From contig CDROCS010003444.1 of the NCBI GenBank assembly GCA_977020255.1, positions 62,001 to 126,000 of the forward strand: a DNA stretch of 64,000 nt. Direction: 5' to 3'. Shown one piece after another: positions 45,575 to 62,703 of this stretch. The position numbers were made by a program, and so were the translations under genes. The stretch comes from Obrimoposthia wandeli. Lineage: Eukaryota. Numbering within the stretch: position 1 is the stretch's first letter; each line of letters opens with the position of its first letter. Under the pieces are notes generated by a model. That model had not been told where the DNA came from and searched no databases. It saw only the letters and a program-made list of their open reading frames with translations.

Positions 45575-46171
45575 CTACAACTGTAAGAAGCTTTTGATTC
45601 CCGTAAATACGATTTGTGCAGCCATTGCAGCCAACACCAAACCTGTAATTTTACTGAGAATATTCAAGCCAGTACGGCCTAATATTTTTTCAATACGTGC
45701 AGCTAAATGCAATAGTATTAACAGCGCCATTAAAGCACATAGCATACCTAGGATGCCATAAACTAGCTGCTCGCCTTTTAATTCTGCACCTATAACCAGT
45801 ATCGCACCAATCGTCGCTGGACCGATTATAGTGGGTATTGCCAGTGGCACAACAGCAACATCATCTATTGATTCAACCCCCGTTGCGTGGCTGCGCACGC
45901 CATCACTGACCAAACTGACTGCCGATAAAAATAATAGTGCCCCTGCTCCTATGCGAAAGGCATCCAAGGTAATACCTAAAATAGCAAAGAGCGATTCACC
46001 AAAAAACATCAAGACTAAACTGATGCACATGGCAGAGATGACGGCTCTGTTGGCAATATTCGCTCGTTCACCAACATTTTTTCCTTTTGTCAGCGACAAA
46101 AACATAGAAACGACAAAAAAGGGAGCGAACAAGAAAAAGAATTTAATTGCAGTTGAAAAGATGAGCGTCAT
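45575..46171 (-). CDS. marC: MarC family membrane protein
   Basis: LFAPFFVVSMFL, LGITLDAFRIGAG, VAVVPLAIPTIIGPATI and KITGLVLAAMA. Likely start is the ATG at 46171. Confidence 0.9.
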   Translation of the reverse strand: MTLIFSTAIKFFFLFAPFFVVSMFLSLTKGKNVGERANIANRAVISAMCISLVLMFFGESLFAILGITLDAFRIGAGALLFLSAVSLVSDGVRSHATGVESIDDVAVVPLAIPTIIGPATIGAILVIGAELKGEQLVYGILGMLCALMALLILLHLAARIEKILGRTGLNILSKITGLVLAAMAAQIVFTGIKSFLQL

Positions 46172-46331
46172 AAGAGATCCGAAATTTAGCAATTTTAATC
46201 TAATAAAATGTAAGAAGCGATTAGGTAATAATAGCAGATCAGTAGCCGTATAAAAAAAGGTAACAATATTCAAGATTTCTCCTGAAAACGGTTACCTCTT
46301 AACATGTACTATAATCGACTAATAAATACGC

Positions 46332-49300
46332 TTATTGTGCCAACACATTTTCTTCAGCCAGTGCTTGCGCTGCTTGTATTAGCTTAGGGTTATCTGAATT
46401 CAATAACTTTTTTGCTTTTAAAGTGGGGAATTCAACATCTATATCAACTACTCGCCCATCTCTACATACATTGATAATAGTATCCATACATGAAGATAGC
46501 AAAGAGTACTTTTCATCTGGTGCTGCAATGATAGTTTGCAAACCAAGGTCTGTCATAAAGCCTAATGAAGTCATAGTGTTTTCTGAATCAAGCTTGTTAA
46601 ATGCTTCATCAAATACCGACAAACTCATACCGCCTACTGCTCGCCCTTCAGGCCCTTCTTTAAGTCGATAAGAAGCGGCAAGTGCGGCTGCCATCGCCAC
46701 GTAAAACGGTACTTGGTGCTCCCCGCCTGAACCGGTTTTAATACGCTGCGTTAAGGTTGTTTTACGGTTGCCTTGCAGGTCCTTAATGACTAACTCAAAG
46801 TTGTAAAAGTTACGATAGTCTTGTAATAAACTACTTTCGCCTTCGCTTTTAAGTACATCATGAATTTTTTCTAGTGCATTATGGTAAGGCTTTTCAGCAT
46901 CGTAACTAATATCAAATAATGAGCCAACATTCGCTTGATCAATACGCGTATACGCTTCCACCAGCTCTAAAATATCTTTTAGCTCAGGGTTCGGTGTCAT
47001 TTCAAATCCGTATGTTTCCTTATGGAAAGGGCGGTTTTTAAGATGCTGGTTTAACTCTCTTATCAAATCCTTAATTTGATTAATTTGATCATTTAAGTGT
47101 GCGACAAAATCAGATCTGAAGGCTGCTTCAGCTTCTTTGCGAGCACTTTCTGCTTTAACTTTATACTCAGCTAGTTCAGTATCGATCAGCGCTTGTAAAG
47201 TTTCACTCACATAACCTTCTAGTTCAGCGTGTGAAGAATCGGGGCTGATTTTATCTAAACCTTGATGGGATAAACCGCCACCATGATACTGAGCTTTGTA
47301 TTGAGCAACTGCATCACGAACCGAGTATTTTTTCTTCTCATGCAATTGTAATTCAGATTGTGCTTTTTTGGCTGCCTCAAAAATTATTCTATCAAGCTCT
47401 CCTGCACAACTTTCATCTAGGTAGTCACGTTTTTCTTGGGCAAACTGTGCATTAAATTCTGCTTTTTTCTCACAAATAGTACGTGCTTGAGCATGCTCTT
47501 GTAGCTCTTGATCTAGTACTTCAAGTGCCGCGTTATCCTTAATCATGGCGGTACGTGCTTTCTGCAATTTATCCATGATATTTTTATGCTGCTGCTCTGC
47601 TTGTTTTTGCTGATCAGCTAGTTCTGCGATTTTTGCTTGGATGCCGGTATCGTCATGGTTTCTCAAATCTTCTATCGCTTGGCGATGCCCTGCTATCTCA
47701 GTTGCCAATTGAGTACGTTGATTCACCAATTCAAAAGTACTTTCTGTATTACCCACTAAGCTAGTGGTTAAATTGATAAGATTATCACGCAACTTTTCTA
47801 ATGTTTGATGACGCTGACCTAAACTGGTGAATTCAGCCACCATTACATCTACTTGCTTACCTTGCAATGCTAATTGATCACCGCGACGGCGCACTCCCAT
47901 AATGGGGGTTTGCTCGTGAATAGAAGTTGTTGATCCTTCTGTTTGCAACATACAGTCATACGTTAAAGCGCGTTCTTGCTTGAGCAACTCTGTTTCAGTT
48001 TCAACCGCAATAACACTTCCTAGCGCTCGGTTCATATAAGCTTGTGCATGCTCATTATCAGTATCGATAAAATGCGCTAGTGAATTAGGCTTGGTTCTTT
48101 TTAACCAATCACGTGAACGAGTGGTATTAATAATACGACAGCCTTTTAAATGGCGCCCTTTACGACGATATAAAGTAATTGCTTCTTTGACGTGATCAGC
48201 GTCAACAATCAAGGCCTCGCGGCGAGCACCCAAAAATGACTCGATGGCAATTCGCCACTTATCATCATTGATATCAACCATTTCACACACGGGTGTTGAT
48301 TCAATTCCGTAATCTGCCAATAGCGCCATTAATTCGCGCGTGTTGTGCCTTACCGGTGCTTTACCCTGCTTTAGCTGTTCTACTTGGCCTTTTTCATTTT
48401 GAATTTTACTGCGTAACTCATTGATACGAATGACTGATTCTTCAAATTTACGACCAATATCTCGGCGCACTGTATCTACTTGCCCCTTAAGCTGTACTAA
48501 CGTGCTATCAACTTCTACTGGCTCAGTGGGCCAGCTACTAGCCAGCATATCTTCCCCGCTGCGCCATAGCTCAACACATTTATTCAGTAAAGGTACAAAT
48601 TTTTCAGGCAGTAAATCTGCATGCTCAGCAAAACCGACCGTGGTACGCAGTAAATTGTAGCTGTTTTGTATTTGATCTTTTACGATACCCTCTTCATGTA
48701 ACTGAGCGGTAATCGTGGTTTCCAATGCTTTAATCTGATGAGCAGAGTTAGTGTTATTCAGTTGGGCACGGGCATTGGCAAGATCTTGCATCAAGTTATT
48801 TAAATCAGCCGATTGCTTTTCTAACTCACCTTGTAGCTTCGCTTCTTTCACTTGATTTTCTTCAAGGCGATCAGTAGAGCTTTCTTTTTTCAGGTCTGCA
48901 TTTTCAAAGCGGGTTTCGTGCACCACCCACTCATATTCAACTGCATTTTTGATATTACGCTGTATGCCAGTGCACAACTCTGTCACTTTGCCCAGCGCAT
49001 CTACTCTATTTGCAACCTCAGCGGTTTTTTCTTCCATTGCTCGGTATTCTTCAAGCGATTTTCTAAAAGCGCCTACGTGAACAACTTTCTCTTCTAATAC
49101 AAACTCACGTACAAAGCGAGTTGGGCTATCAATAGGTATAAATCGCAGCGCATTTTTAAAGTTTTTAATAAACTTCTCGTCATCATTAGGACGACTCATA
49201 TCCTCTGATAAATGACTAACTAAATCTTTTATGTAACGACTTACCCGCTTCTCTAAAATCATTTCAGGGCATTGCTTAAATAATGCTGTTTTTACCACAT

Positions 49301-49760
49301 CCCAGTCTTTTGGTAAGCGCCCCTTACCTTCTTTAACACTAAAGTCATCTAACTGCACTGAAAAATTAGGCAGTATAAAACGACCTAAAACTTCTTCATC
49401 TGGTGAGGCTGTATTGGCGCTAATGGCAATGCCTACACAGGTCTCAGTTGCGGTTTGAGTATCAAAAAAACTAAGCGCTAAATAAGAGATAGAATCTTCA
49501 CGAGCAGTGGCTTTTTTTCCTCCATCATCCATAAAACCTAAGCAATAGGTACGCAATGACCTTTCGCTTTTTTGCCCAGCCGATGCGTTAAAACTAATAT
49601 GGCGTTTATTACCACCTAGTAACACCGTTTGTATAGCATCGAGCAGTGAAGACTTACCAGAACCATTAGGGCCAACAATTGCCACGTTGCCTTTGATAGG
49701 GATTTCAACCGCCCCTAGTACATACCAATTTACCAGGACAATTCGATTAAGCTGTTTCAT
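46332..49760 (-). CDS. jetC: SMC-like ATPase JetC/MksB
   Basis: RIVLVNWY, Walker A GPNGSGKS, long coiled coils around a hinge, signature [11 protein letters not shown], Walker B/D-loop [11 protein letters not shown]. 1142 aa. Confidence 0.9.
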
Positions 49761-50514
49761 CGTTATTCTCCAATTCGGTATCTATCCGGCTGTCAGTTGT
49801 GCTTTGTGTAGTTTGTGCAAACTGCTCATCTAAATTTTCGCCTTCATTCGCTGTATCGGAATGATCTCCAAGCTCGCTGTCCTGAGCATCAAGCGCAGCT
49901 TCCTCATCGTTAGTTAGCGCATCTCGTGAGTTTTCTAAATCGCACAATAGCTCTATTTGTTTAATATGATCTTCAACAATCACTTGGCGAATAGTTGGCA
50001 ACACACTAAATAGTACGCTTTTAGGATTACTTTCGTCTACTTTGCCGCGCTCGATTAAACCGTGGCGCGCAAAGAGAGACAACAGCTCTTTTGTGCGCGT
50101 CTCGTTCGGAAGGTCTTTACCGGTTAATGTTTCAAACAATGAAAGCAACTCATCAGTGCTGGTAAAAGCTTTACCGTTTTCAATTTCAAAATTTTCAAGC
50201 TTTTGTTCGTACATCTGGCGCATACAGAGCAGTATCAACGATTCATCTAATTTGAGTTTTAAGTTACGCTCATGCCCTTGCGGTAATACACCTAGGTAAG
50301 CTTCATCAGGCTGGTAAATAAAAGACCAACCAATGGCTGCAAATAAATCTTTAAAATAATCAATATGCGCTGAAATCAAAAAATAACTCTGGCGATGCGA
50401 ACTGCGATCAGCGTGGATAAATTGATTAGTCATCAACAAATTAGCAGCGTGTATAAAATCTTCTTCTTGGTATTTTTCACTGCGACTAATAATCTTTTGT
50501 AAATCGCTTAGCAT
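49747..50514 (-). CDS. jetB: JetB/MksE (DUF4194-like) kite subunit
   Basis: [41 protein letters not shown] and VLPTIRQV, with an acidic tail. Overlaps both neighbours. Confidence 0.85.
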
Positions 50515-51932
50515 TACTTATTTCCTTGTTGCGTAGAAGAAATGATAAAGTCTCGGCACTCGACCATATTATCGACTTCTATATATTGATCTTTAAATTC
50601 GATTTTATAGCGATCATTGGTCGCTTTACCCTGTTTACCCAATGAAGCTAAATGTCGGATATAGCTAAAACAGATATAGTCTTCAATAGTACTTATCTCG
50701 AACTGACTGGCTTTTAGAGTAGTGTTTTTACCAAAGTGGCGAGCTAGGTATTCTTCTATTCTGTCTATTTTCACCTCGCGTCGCTCTTTGTACTGTTTAA
50801 AAAGCTCTCTTAATTCTATTACTTTAGGATCAATCACTTGCTGATGAATAACCCTAGGTGCTACTTGAATACGCCGTTTTATTGGAGAGCGGATACTACT
50901 AGGCGATAAAAACCCGACATTTTCAAGTTGGGTAATTGGCAGTTGCTGTAGCAGTGTTTCATCATTGGCAACTTGCTTGATTAACCGTGATAAGCGCGAA
51001 GCCATACCCGGTGTGGTTTTATCCATATAACGGATAGTATCTGCTACGCGTTTTTCTAGCTTGTAGCGGAAATCATCAATGCTATCAAGACGCTTATCAA
51101 CAGATTCAAAAATACGGATGATACGATTTATATGCGTATGCACCATAGATTCAGCATCTATATATTCATTTTCAAACTGCAGCTGATAGTGATGAATTAA
51201 CTTTTCTAGCTTGAGTGGATCAAACTGTAAATCACGCAGCATGGAAAGAATTTGGCGGCGAAAGCGAAATGGATTGTTCTTTGTTTTTAGCGTTTTATAA
51301 TCTGAAACGAGTATTTGCTCAACAAAGGTGTCAAAGAACTTCTTCACAATTTCTTGTGGGCTGTGTGATTGCGCCAAACTAATCTTTAGTTCACGCAGGC
51401 CCAATAACATATCGGTTAGATGAGCACTAAACTCAGACGATGCTTGCGCGGCCTCTTGTAATGTAATACCTCGCCCATCGGGATCATTAATCGCCGCTTC
51501 TAATGAGCTAAGTACATTGAGTACCGCACCACCATAAGAGCGTTTCTCCATTTTTGCGATAGAAACTAACGAGCGCAGTAAATAACTATTAGAAGGCGCC
51601 ATTAAAACATAGCTTTTGTAAATTTGCTGCTCTTCTTCCAGCCAGCCAGTGGACACTAGACGACGGTAAATTCTATTGGCATATTCTGCGGTTGATCTAG
51701 GAGGCTGGTAATCTTCTTCAATATCCTCCTCTTCTCGCTCCCAAATTCGCAAGCCAATGCGCACTACTGTATTTTCAATAGTTGAACGCACTAGGTCTTT
51801 CGCAATGAAAGGTTCTATCAAATCTTCATCGAAGAAAAGATCGGCCAATTCTACTAATACAGTTTGATATACATACCTGTTTTTACCCGATAGCGGGACA
51901 AACAAATCTTCTGGAAGCTTATTAAAAAGCAT
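50514..51932 (-). CDS. jetA: JetA/MksF kleisin-like subunit (DUF3375/DUF5716-like)
   Basis: [44 protein letters not shown] and [15 protein letters not shown]. First gene of the three-gene SMC operon, with an AGGTGA RBS. Confidence 0.82.
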
Positions 51933-52253
51933 CTATCACCTAGTTAGAAAGTTAAGATTTTTATGATGGTCTTGCCACACAATTTCAATAATGTGTACTT
52001 TTAAAACTTTATTTATTATTGGCAAACCACTTATTTATGGACAATTGAGCATTTTATTTAATTTGAATAAAAAGCCAAACAAAAATAATACGAGGATTTT
52101 AGCCTAGTCTTAGCTGACAAAAAAGACTTTAGACCATTGAATTAAATAAATTCAGGCTTGTTACATCTACAATCATACAGATGCAGTTCTTTAGCTTAAA
52201 AACACTCTATTTTTACGACAATTCTCTCAACATTTATCCTAAGACACTATGCA

Positions 52254-53024
52254 TTAATGCACAACTGCCAGATTCGCAATTAAGCGCTGTAAATCTTCCG
52301 GGGTATCAATGCCAGCGGGGGGTGATTCTATCGCTTTGGCAACGTGTATTCTATGCCCGTACCACATAGCCCGCAATTGCTCTAAACATTCGGTTTCTTC
52401 CACTGCCGCAGGCGCCCATGTTACATATTGATTTAGCAGAGCAACTTTGTAAGCGTAAATACCAATGTGTCTTTGCCAAACAAACCCTTCAGGAATTTCG
52501 TTAGGCAGTTGTGGCTGGTTAAAAGCATCTCGTGGCCAGGGAATAGGAGCACGGGAAAAGTACATCGCTAAACCATTAACATCCGTTAACACTTTTACAC
52601 TGTTCGGGTTCAGTAGCTGCTCTAATGCTTGAATTGGCTCACTCAATGTTGCAATGCTCGCCTGTGTTTGTCGCGCTAAATTTTCTGCCACTTGATTGAT
52701 AATTATAGCAGGAATTAAAGGTTCATCACCTTGCACATTAACGACGATTTCATCATCAGCTAATTGAAAATACTCGACAACTTCTTGCAGCCTATCGGTA
52801 CCTGTTGGGTGATTTTCACGGGTCATGCACACTGAAGCTCCAAAGCTGCGTGCCACTTTTTCAATGCGCGCATCATCAGTTGCTATAATGACTTTACTGG
52901 CATTAGATTGCATGGATCTTTCATAAACATGCTGAATCATTGGTTTGCCAGCAATATCAGCTAAGGGTTTGCCCGGAAATCGGCTAGATCCATAGCGAGC
53001 AGGTATAACAACCGTGAAATCCAT
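52254..53024 (-). CDS. kdsB: 3-deoxy-manno-octulosonate cytidylyltransferase
   Basis: [38 protein letters not shown] and LEQLRAMW. Confidence 0.97.
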
Positions 53025-61317: not shown

Positions 61318-62703
61318 TCAACTCTCTCTAAACCAGCTAGTACCTTCGCGCGTATCTTTAAGAACTATCCCTTGGCCTAACAACTCATCTCTGATGCGAT
61401 CTGATTCAGCAAAGTCTTTATTCGCACGTGCTGTTTTACGATCGATAATTAGCTCATCAATTTGCGCTGCTGTAATTTCCCCCTCTTTCGCCTCACCTTG
61501 TAAAAATGCTTGCGGGTCTTGCTGTAACAACCCAAGACTTCCCGCTAATTCAAGCAATTGATGAGCTAGCGCAGGCGCTGTTACTAATTTCTGGCGCGTT
61601 GCTGTATTTAGCTCGTTGACTAATTCAAATAATACTGCAATAGCTTTTGGAGTATTAAAATCATCGTTCATTGCCGCTACAAAATCACGCTTGTAATGAT
61701 TATCTAGTGCCCCGGGTATTGCTTGCACATTACGTAGTGATTGATAAAAACGCTCTAACTTGATTTGCGCTTCTTTTAGTGAGTTTTCTGAATAATCAAT
61801 GTAGCTGCGATAGTGCACGCTGGTCAAAAACAAGCGCACTACTTCTGCATTGTATTTATCGAGTACATCCCGGATGGTGAAAAAATTACCTAACGATTTA
61901 GACATTTTCTCCGAGTTTACTCGCACCGCTCCTGCGTGCATCCAAAGATTGGCAAATGTACAACCATTCGCCGCTTCTGATTGTGCTATTTCATTTTCAT
62001 GGTGCGGAAACGGTAAATCAGGGCCTCCACCGTGAATATCAAAATTATCACCCAAACAATGCTTAGACATGGCAGAGCATTCAATATGCCAACCCGGGCG
62101 GCCATTACCCCATGGAGACTCCCAGCTAACCTCTCCTTCTTTAGCTGCTTTCCAAAGGACAAAATCAATCGGATTTTCTTTTACATCGTTAATCATTACA
62201 CGAGCTCCAGCGCGTAACTCATCAACGTTTTTATTGGTTAGCTTCCCGTATTCAGCAAATTTATGCACTCTATAATAAACATCGCCATTGCTGGCAGGAT
62301 ATGCATAACCTTTGTCTATTAATGTTTGTGTTATCTCAATAATGCCTTTGATATGCCCTGTAGCACGTGGTTCTTGATCAGGTGGCAATACAAACAGGCG
62401 TTTTTCATCTTCATGCATCGCGCCAATCATGCGTTCTGTTAGCTGCTCCATACTTTCGTTGTTTTCATTCGCGCGATTAAGAATTTTATCATCGACATCG
62501 GTGATATTACGTACATAATTAACCTTCCAGCCTTGAGAGCGCAAAAAACGGGTAATAACATCAAACGACACCATCACTCTTGCATGGCCTATATGACAAA
62601 AATCATAGACGGTCATGCCGCAAACATACATACTGATTTCGTTATTAACAAGTGGTTTAAAAGGCGCTTTTTGCTTAGTCAAAGTATCGTATATTTGTAA
62701 CAT
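61318..62703 (-). CDS. cysS: cysteinyl-tRNA synthetase
   Basis: YVCGMTVYDFCHIGH, DFVLWK, GRPGWHIECSAM, DIHGGG and KMSKS. Confidence 0.98.
   Translation of the reverse strand: MLQIYDTLTKQKAPFKPLVNNEISMYVCGMTVYDFCHIGHARVMVSFDVITRFLRSQGWKVNYVRNITDVDDKILNRANENNESMEQLTERMIGAMHEDEKRLFVLPPDQEPRATGHIKGIIEITQTLIDKGYAYPASNGDVYYRVHKFAEYGKLTNKNVDELRAGARVMINDVKENPIDFVLWKAAKEGEVSWESPWGNGRPGWHIECSAMSKHCLGDNFDIHGGGPDLPFPHHENEIAQSEAANGCTFANLWMHAGAVRVNSEKMSKSLGNFFTIRDVLDKYNAEVVRLFLTSVHYRSYIDYSENSLKEAQIKLERFYQSLRNVQAIPGALDNHYKRDFVAAMNDDFNTPKAIAVLFELVNELNTATRQKLVTAPALAHQLLELAGSLGLLQQDPQAFLQGEAKEGEITAAQIDELIIDRKTARANKDFAESDRIRDELLGQGIVLKDTREGTSWFRES

Follow-up and report, generated by a model that had tools for sequence, protein, structure and literature searches.

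A nuclease-less Wadjet-type JetABC operon as a candidate replacement for Smc-ScpAB in a family of Oceanospirillales

Bacterial chromosomes are regarded as organised by Smc-ScpAB or, in one gammaproteobacterial branch, by MukBEF. Here we describe a three-gene operon, jetABC, found in a window of 64,000 nucleotides (positions 62,001 to 126,000, forward strand, of contig CDROCS010003444.1, hereafter C3444, in the assembly GCA_977020255.1 recorded under Obrimoposthia wandeli). Its products are predicted to form a complete holocomplex of the structural maintenance of chromosomes (SMC) type, from the Wadjet type I lineage and its subgroup with a DUF5716-type kleisin, and the operon has no gene for the JetD Toprim nuclease, a protein of DUF3322 and DUF2220 domains. 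By analogy with related complexes, we consider that this nuclease-less JetABC probably extrudes loops of the chromosome itself and took over the role of Smc-ScpAB. With somewhat less assurance, we also find it likely that this would be a second, independent natural replacement of Smc-ScpAB, made by a Wadjet-derived complex with ParB alongside, in at least 150 species genomes of one Oceanospirillales family and at least eight sampled genomes of a second lineage. A preliminary description of the window had proposed a domesticated chromosome-organising condensin at a position equivalent to that of the muk genes; the domestication is supported more strongly than was proposed, as the operon is nuclease-free, vertically inherited and under purifying selection, and the Muk-equivalent position does not stand.

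Mutual exclusion of JetABC and Smc-ScpAB

Two samples of genomes define the comparisons. The family sample comprises 190 species genomes, many of them metagenome-assembled genomes (MAGs), from the Nitrincolaceae-like family (Oceanospirillales) of the relative G001, whilst the order sample is an even sample of 301 genomes, 15 of which belong to the clade described below (seven JetA-positive family members and eight members of the second lineage). A match to JetA occurs in 156 of the 190 family genomes, always as a single orthologue, 61-97% identical, at most two or three of these matches being weak or partial. In the family, 20 genomes have Smc and 17 have ScpB scoring above its cut-off, and all of these fall within a single contiguous block (G147-G171, about 25 small genomes), which lacks JetA and is the only large block of the family to do so. 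No family genome combines Smc or ScpB with JetA, and none of the 156 carriers has Smc. Of the 301 genomes sampled across the order, 276 have Smc, but 0 of the 15 clade genomes do, and the 25 Smc-less genomes include all seven sampled JetA-positive family members together with all eight of the second lineage. The relative G188, with a 97%-identical JetA, also lacks Smc, and five relatives, some of them with complete chromosomes, have none of Smc (TIGR02168), ScpA or MukB. Matches to the N-terminal domain of MukB (PF04310) did not exceed 25 bits and were P-loop noise in short open reading frames (ORFs) of 101 family genomes, with a model that the E. coli control passes. In sum, none of Smc, ScpA, ScpB or MukB, for which a genome-wide search had been suggested, was found in the JetABC carriers searched, where ParB is retained.

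The former site of smc can be located. Genomes of the Smc-retaining block show the gene order ccmI-smc-zipA (loci L062-L064). In G001, G002, G003 and G123, zipA starts some 60-70 nt after ccmI and smc is absent, and G443, which belongs to the second lineage, leaves no space for a gene of 3.5 kb between ccmI and the zipA that follows it. In the assembly that holds the window, the best ccmI match (C3917:161541-162773, 69% identical to that of G001) is followed about 60 nt downstream by the best zipA match (C3917:162837-165710), which is a single open frame. These computations show that smc was removed from its place between ccmI and zipA and that scpAB is gone, so that JetABC is the only complex of the SMC, Muk or Mks type found in carriers.

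The assembly is a mixture of a eukaryote and several bacteria (1.35 Gb in 6912 contigs, C3444 among them). At least five gammaproteobacterial genomes are present beside eukaryotic low-GC contigs (contigs C4666, C6803, C506, C253, C3917 and C3444), because five distinct zipA loci occur in it, three of them adjoining smc. These three smc genes, on contigs C4666, C6803 and C506, each adjoin their own zipA, and full-length identity of their products to the Smc of the family does not exceed 45%; GC content does not discriminate. Their zipA neighbours and low identity indicate that they belong to other gammaproteobacteria in the mixture, and they were rejected as genes of this bacterium on those grounds and on that of the smc-less junction of C3917. 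In public data, the operon has its closest relatives in Oceanospirillaceae/Nitrincolaceae MAGs and in the Osedax symbiont Rs2, with JetA proteins 82-97% identical.

A separate observation concerns the ZipA that C3917 encodes for the Nitrincolaceae-like bacterium. It appears to be a protein of about 958 amino acids (aa) read from a single open frame; both of its termini are conserved, which implies a very long linker. Other ZipA frames of the assembly have 317-432 aa, and the ZipA of G001 has more than 479 aa with a low-complexity middle.

Absence of JetD, descent and selection

No match to the JetD domains PF09983 and PF11795 rose above threshold anywhere in the assembly, a result of little weight by itself because the assembly is a fragmented mixture, and it is the relatives that carry the argument. 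No gene lies between jetC and marC in 11 close relatives, no JetD-sized gene follows jetC at 18 loci spread across the family, and in the second lineage JetD is found neither beside jetC at five loci nor genome-wide. Any JetD domain occurs in just 14 of the 190 family genomes, never at the jetABC locus, which leaves 176 without it; no jetD was found anywhere in 143 of the 156 JetA carriers, and in the order sample one of the 15 clade genomes has JetD. In G001, this JetD is part of a separate, complete jetABCD of the DUF3375-kleisin type, 0.78 Mb from the orthologous operon. The preliminary description had allowed for close relatives with jetD at the locus and for a cognate jetD elsewhere; relatives have none at the locus, and where they do have JetD it is always at another one. 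The window itself offers neither space for jetD nor a remnant of it, as was first noticed: 321 bp separate jetA from kdsB, and the real gap between jetC and marC is about 60-160 nt, because the Pfam match of marC begins at residue 36.

Two observations on JetD stand apart. The second system of G001 (L022:10895-18776, at about 3.86 Mb of G001:C1) has a 378-aa ORF between jetC and jetD (L022:12082-13218) that matched nothing in Pfam or PADLOC. In the order sample, a genome of 3.8 Mb (G350) has no Smc, no PF18982 JetA and a strong JetD match (E 3.6e-56), which makes it an incomplete assembly or else a further lineage that deserves attention.

In a tree of JetC, the family and the second lineage form one Smc-less clade, monophyletic with a Shimodaira-Hasegawa-like approximate likelihood ratio (SH-aLRT) support of 99 and with short terminal branches, where the jetABC of the second lineage is the sister group of the operon of the family. 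Next to this clade, in a branching order that the tree leaves open, stand JetD-linked operons and a long-branched JetD-less operon (L029), and further out come DUF3375-type JetABCD and a mixed group with JetC proteins of 1203-1243 aa. The genomes with these more distant JetD-linked PF18982 operons (L028, L030 and L031) all have Smc. A tree of CysS from the same genomes shows the same subgroups as that of JetC, and it brings the second lineage together with the family and the Smc-retaining block in a single clade of 100/100 support; moreover, the identity of JetA to that of the window follows the identity of CysS (Spearman rho 0.61). Such agreement indicates vertical inheritance since at least the radiation of the family, and the computation shows that the three-gene form was fixed in an ancestor of most of the family and of the second family-level lineage. 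Since JetD-linked systems flank the node beneath the clade on either side, a loss of JetD on its stem would be the most parsimonious path in a tree whose root is not established.

The ratio of nonsynonymous to synonymous substitutions (dN/dS) was taken from one pair, the window and L009, pairs further apart being saturated at synonymous sites. It amounts to 0.015 for jetC, 0.028 for jetA and 0.068 for jetB, and among the neighbouring genes to 0.027 for exbB, 0.044 for kdsB, 0.079 for lpxK and 0.095 for comEC, so purifying selection on jetC and jetA is stronger than on kdsB or lpxK. The Walker A, signature and Walker B motifs of JetC are invariant in 32 members of the clade. The operon is therefore neither a sporadic acquisition, given its 156 carriers and vertical descent, nor a set of genes under relaxed selection, two outcomes that would have spoken against a domesticated condensin. 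As a side observation, the jetB of G049 (L048:5406-6040) is split into two ORFs of 123 and 115 aa by a frameshift or an error of sequencing in the assembly of that genome, where cysS also appears in two pieces.

A probable chromosomal condensin and its alternatives

The JetABC of Wadjet systems extrudes loops as a dimer of motors, and recruitment of the nuclease runs through the “larynx” of JetC and probably an N-terminal helix of JetB (10.1101/2023.11.03.565488). The nuclease-less MksBEF of P. aeruginosa extends cis contacts along the chromosome and supports its segregation (10.1101/2020.05.18.101659). By extension, the complex described here would consist of a dimer of the JetC ATPase with the JetA kleisin and the JetB KITE subunits, and it would load on the chromosome and extrude loops as an ATP-driven dimer of motors, as JetABC and MksBEF do elsewhere. 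Without the nuclease, sister chromosomes would be compacted and individualised and the DNA left uncut, the role of Smc-ScpAB thus being taken over in an independent parallel to its replacement by MukBEF. That the complex acts on the chromosome is suggested by its status as the sole condensin, the empty smc site and the strong purifying selection. Segregation probably still proceeds by ParABS, given that ParB is retained.

Four known systems offer points of comparison. The Wadjet type I JetABCD of B. cereus Q1, E. coli GF4-3 and P. aeruginosa PA14 (also named MksBEFG or EptABCD) shares with it the three core subunits, their order and their translational coupling; the JetC profile matches solved JetC chains, the JetA model matches solved JetA kleisins, and JetD-linked operons are among the nearest relatives in the JetC tree. 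The operon of the window differs from them by the absence of JetD and by being core, vertical and slowly evolving instead of sporadic, and its kleisin is of the DUF5716/PF18982 type, unlike the DUF3375 kleisin of the JetD-linked second system of G001. Since a search for the defining nuclease came back negative, the operon does not make up a full Wadjet system, and its sequences are those of neither MukBEF nor Smc-ScpAB. The MksBEF of P. aeruginosa is likewise encoded by a Muk-like SMC operon of three genes that lacks MksG/JetD; it is presumed to descend from a JetABCD that lost the nuclease, and it acts on the chromosome (PMC10586767; 10.1101/2020.05.18.101659); there, however, Smc-ScpAB is kept and MksBEF is a backup, whereas here Smc-ScpAB has been deleted. 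Our operon fits the loose category “MksBEF”, that of nuclease-less Muk-like condensins, and differs from the studied example as sole condensin, in kleisin subtype and as a family-wide core operon.

MukBEF, from Enterobacterales, Vibrionales and Pasteurellales, likewise combines a kleisin, a KITE protein and an SMC protein in one operon, and it took the place of Smc-ScpAB in a gammaproteobacterial lineage. JetA has MukF among its best structural matches, and in this genus jetABC follows lpxK-kdsB, near the position of mukFEB in E. coli. Nevertheless, JetC has no match to the N-terminal domain of MukB and only 1142 aa, compared with the 4461 bp (about 1486 codons) of E. coli mukB, and the adjacency of jetABC to kdsB is not ancestral. 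Furthermore, ParB is kept here, whereas most MukBEF lineages have no ParABS (10.1101/2020.05.18.101659). With Smc-ScpAB, finally, JetABC shares the presumed role, that of a single SMC-type chromosome organiser beside ParB. It differs in its partners (JetA and JetB instead of ScpA and ScpB) and in its score on TIGR02168, where JetC reaches 58 bits against a cut-off of 567, and the two complexes are mutually exclusive in the family.

Several points weigh against a replacement of Smc-ScpAB by JetABC. About nine family genomes have neither JetA nor Smc, although many of the genomes are MAGs and at least two of the nine (G106 and G019) have jetC fragments at contig ends. The formally extreme Fisher p-values overstate the weight of the exclusion, because it reflects one or two events and not 156. 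The base of the CysS clade is not resolved, so that one replacement, two replacements and an ancient transfer between lineages cannot be told apart. Some bacteria tolerate the loss of their condensin, hence the loss of Smc and the retention of JetABC need not be causally linked. An effector or nuclease unrelated to JetD may be encoded elsewhere, outside the reach of homology searches. And C3444 and C3917 are presumed, from best-hit identity, to come from the same bacterium.

Among the alternatives, an accessory condensin like the MksBEF of P. aeruginosa, with a main organiser invisible to the searches or no main condensin at all, fares best and is still unlikely. MksBEF usually coexists with Smc-ScpAB and gives mild phenotypes (PMC7485682, PMC11329512, PMC4255302), the retained ParB means that ParABS may carry most of the segregation, and 17 of the 151 family genomes searched have a second KITE of the MksE type. 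Yet that second Mks-like system is sporadic, being absent from the other 134, and the dN/dS values of jetC and jetA, below those of the lipopolysaccharide genes kdsB and lpxK, fit a core function better than a dispensable backup. The accessory status known from P. aeruginosa does not hold here, because the genomes that carry the operon lack Smc-ScpAB and MukBEF and smc has been deleted from its ccmI-zipA site. In 13 family genomes (G048, G063, G134, G143 and G100 among them), the extra MksE-type KITE (PF21980, 46-117 bits) comes without a PF09983 JetD; these genomes may carry second Mks-like systems of another type.

Slightly less probable is that JetABC remains mainly a sensor of plasmids or other foreign DNA, working through an effector other than JetD encoded in trans or through nuclease-free trapping or silencing of small circles, perhaps on DNA imported by ComEC. 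Its subunits are indeed of Wadjet type I by sequence, the closest homologue with a solved structure is the JetC of a complex that cleaves plasmids, comEC is situated 4 kb upstream in the window, and the total-extrusion model implies that the size of a circle is sensed by JetABC alone (PMC10586767). Against this, no fourth gene is conserved beside the operon, whose neighbours vary by subclade and are housekeeping or unrelated genes, and the linkage to comEC is found in one genus only, so that a filter on DNA entering through ComEC is left without support. Defence systems are typically sporadic and fast-evolving, whereas this operon is near-universal, single-copy, vertical and as conserved as CysS. 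A sensor would also leave unexplained that Smc-ScpAB is missing exactly where the operon occurs.

Lastly, an ordinary Wadjet island that lost jetD recently, or whose jetD lies on a missing contig, is scarcely credible, and was discarded, for all the fragmentation and mixture of the assembly, since the complete chromosomes of relatives have no JetD or have it only in a separate, complete second system, the three-gene form is common to at least 143 species genomes and the second lineage, the locus has neither space nor remnant, and selection is not relaxed. No rival explains the complementarity with Smc as well as the takeover of its role by JetABC.

If this takeover is real, the idea that MksBEF and MukBEF arose from Wadjet through loss of JetD, so far only hypothesised (PMC10586767; 10.1101/2025.03.10.642339), gains a testable natural example, a living intermediate on the path from Wadjet to a MukBEF-like chromosomal condensin. 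By earlier accounts MksBEF “usually” or “typically” coexists with Smc-ScpAB or MukBEF (PMC11329512, PMC7485682), and we found no report of a lineage with only JetABC or MksBEF in a literature search that did not extend to the original MksBEF survey of 2011. The material on offer is a clade whose sole SMC complex types as JetA1, JetB1 and JetC1, a Smc-retaining group in the same family and near relatives with linked JetD. The clade includes culturable genera, with isolates of Neptunomonas, Marinobacterium, Amphritea and Nitrincola. Questions that become approachable are which changes turn a defence motor into a chromosome organiser, whether loading is at ParB-parS or random, and whether small circles are still discriminated. 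For annotation, defence finders that accept incomplete Wadjet matches would mislabel a core housekeeping operon.

The operon and its surroundings

The three genes and their immediate neighbours are listed in Table 1. The overlaps of 1 nt (jetA/jetB) and 14 nt (jetB/jetC) and the intact ATPase motifs of the preliminary description were all confirmed by the ORF calls, Pfam and PADLOC, and the host-like composition that it had judged by eye agrees with a uniform GC content of 0.38-0.43 across the region.

Table 1. Features of the jetABC locus (positions in the window)
Feature	Position	Strand	Description
jetA	50514-51932	minus	472 aa; kleisin subunit of the DUF5716/PF18982 type
jetB	49747-50514	minus	255 aa; KITE subunit, DUF4194 core and acidic low-complexity C-terminal tail
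jetC	46332-49760	minus	1142 aa; SMC-type ATPase with hinge
kdsB-jetA spacer	51933-52253	minus	321 bp; probably the promoter of the operon itself (predicted function)
kdsB	52254-53024	minus	TIGR00466, E 1e-94; housekeeping neighbour upstream, context only, outside the system
marC-family transporter gene	45575-46273	minus	PF01914, E 2e-39; downstream neighbour, context only

Typing with profile models, which had been suggested for the subunits, gave JetA1, JetB1 and JetC1. JetA matches PF18982, “Wadjet protein JetA”, in Pfam (E 1.9e-95) and JetA1 in PADLOC (PDLC00443, 724 bits), and JetB matches DUF4194 (E 3e-19) and JetB1 (PDLC00489, 335 bits); on the Pfam model of MksE, which does detect the E. 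coli control, JetB obtains 25 bits with a cut-off of 27. JetC has the AAA_29, SMC_hinge and SbcC_Walker_B domains of Pfam and matches JetC1 (PDLC00503) over its full length with 1781 bits. Its motifs are a Walker A GPNGSGKSS at residues 30-38, a signature SGGEHQ at about 1011-1016 and a Walker B FDEAF at 1050-1054. The acidic, low-complexity tail of JetB covers residues 205-255 approximately (window 49747-49900). The ORFs of JetB have 209-270 aa in the family and 209-219 aa in the second lineage and the JetD-linked relatives.

A search of the PDB with the single JetC sequence gave no match at E 1e-10, and a profile of the clade was needed to reach the solved JetC chains 8as8 (E 4.5e-24) and 8dk2, with nothing closer. 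No relatives were found in the PDB at the sequence level for JetA, profile included, or for JetB. An AlphaFold2 model of JetA, with a predicted local distance difference test score (pLDDT) of 71, has kleisins of the JetA and MukF types as its top Foldseek matches (9qe0_E, 9gm7_C, 7nz2_C1 and 8q72_E).

Upstream of the operon the gene order is comEC, exbB, exbD, lpxK and kdsB, and downstream of jetC come the marC-family gene and then a gene for a Cys/Met pyridoxal phosphate enzyme. The spacer in front of jetA has sigma-70-like matches on the minus strand at 52078-52051 and 52044-52015, in a region where their count is not above chance.

This arrangement is local. kdsB adjoins jetA only in the window and in its 97%-identical relative L009, and in the rest of the nearest subclade a gene for a giant LapA-like adhesin lies directly upstream of jetA. 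The linkage of jetC to marC is kept only in that subclade (JetA 82-97% identical) and not in other genera; elsewhere the operon adjoins unrelated genes such as cbiX, bolA, a LysR-family gene, DUF3422 or a response-regulator PP2C phosphatase gene. Neighbours checked by Pfam and PADLOC include no conserved fourth gene. The E. coli order quoted in the preliminary description, ycaI-msbA-lpxK-ycaQ-ycaR-kdsB-ycbJ-elyC-cmoM-mukFEB in full, is correct. Nonetheless, the synteny comparison ruled out a Muk-equivalent position next to kdsB as the ancestral one and, because the adjacency is specific to one genus, the likeness to the E. coli locus is best read as a coincidence. The adhesin genes (L010:74-9688, L011:35-9688 and L019:698-9604) encode proteins of about 3000 aa or more with LapA, Calx-beta and VWA regions.

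Beyond the clade, other JetD-less PF18982 operons of the order occupy separate, distant branches of the JetC tree, in genomes with Smc, and their KITE proteins match DUF4194, not the MksE model of Pfam. The distant PF18982 group with JetC proteins of 1203-1243 aa (L032-L034, L036, L037 and L039-L041) includes JetD-less operons that adjoin housekeeping genes (upp, an MscS gene and an ion-channel gene), and the genomes of this group keep Smc, all of which suggests further independent losses of the nuclease that led to accessory complexes.

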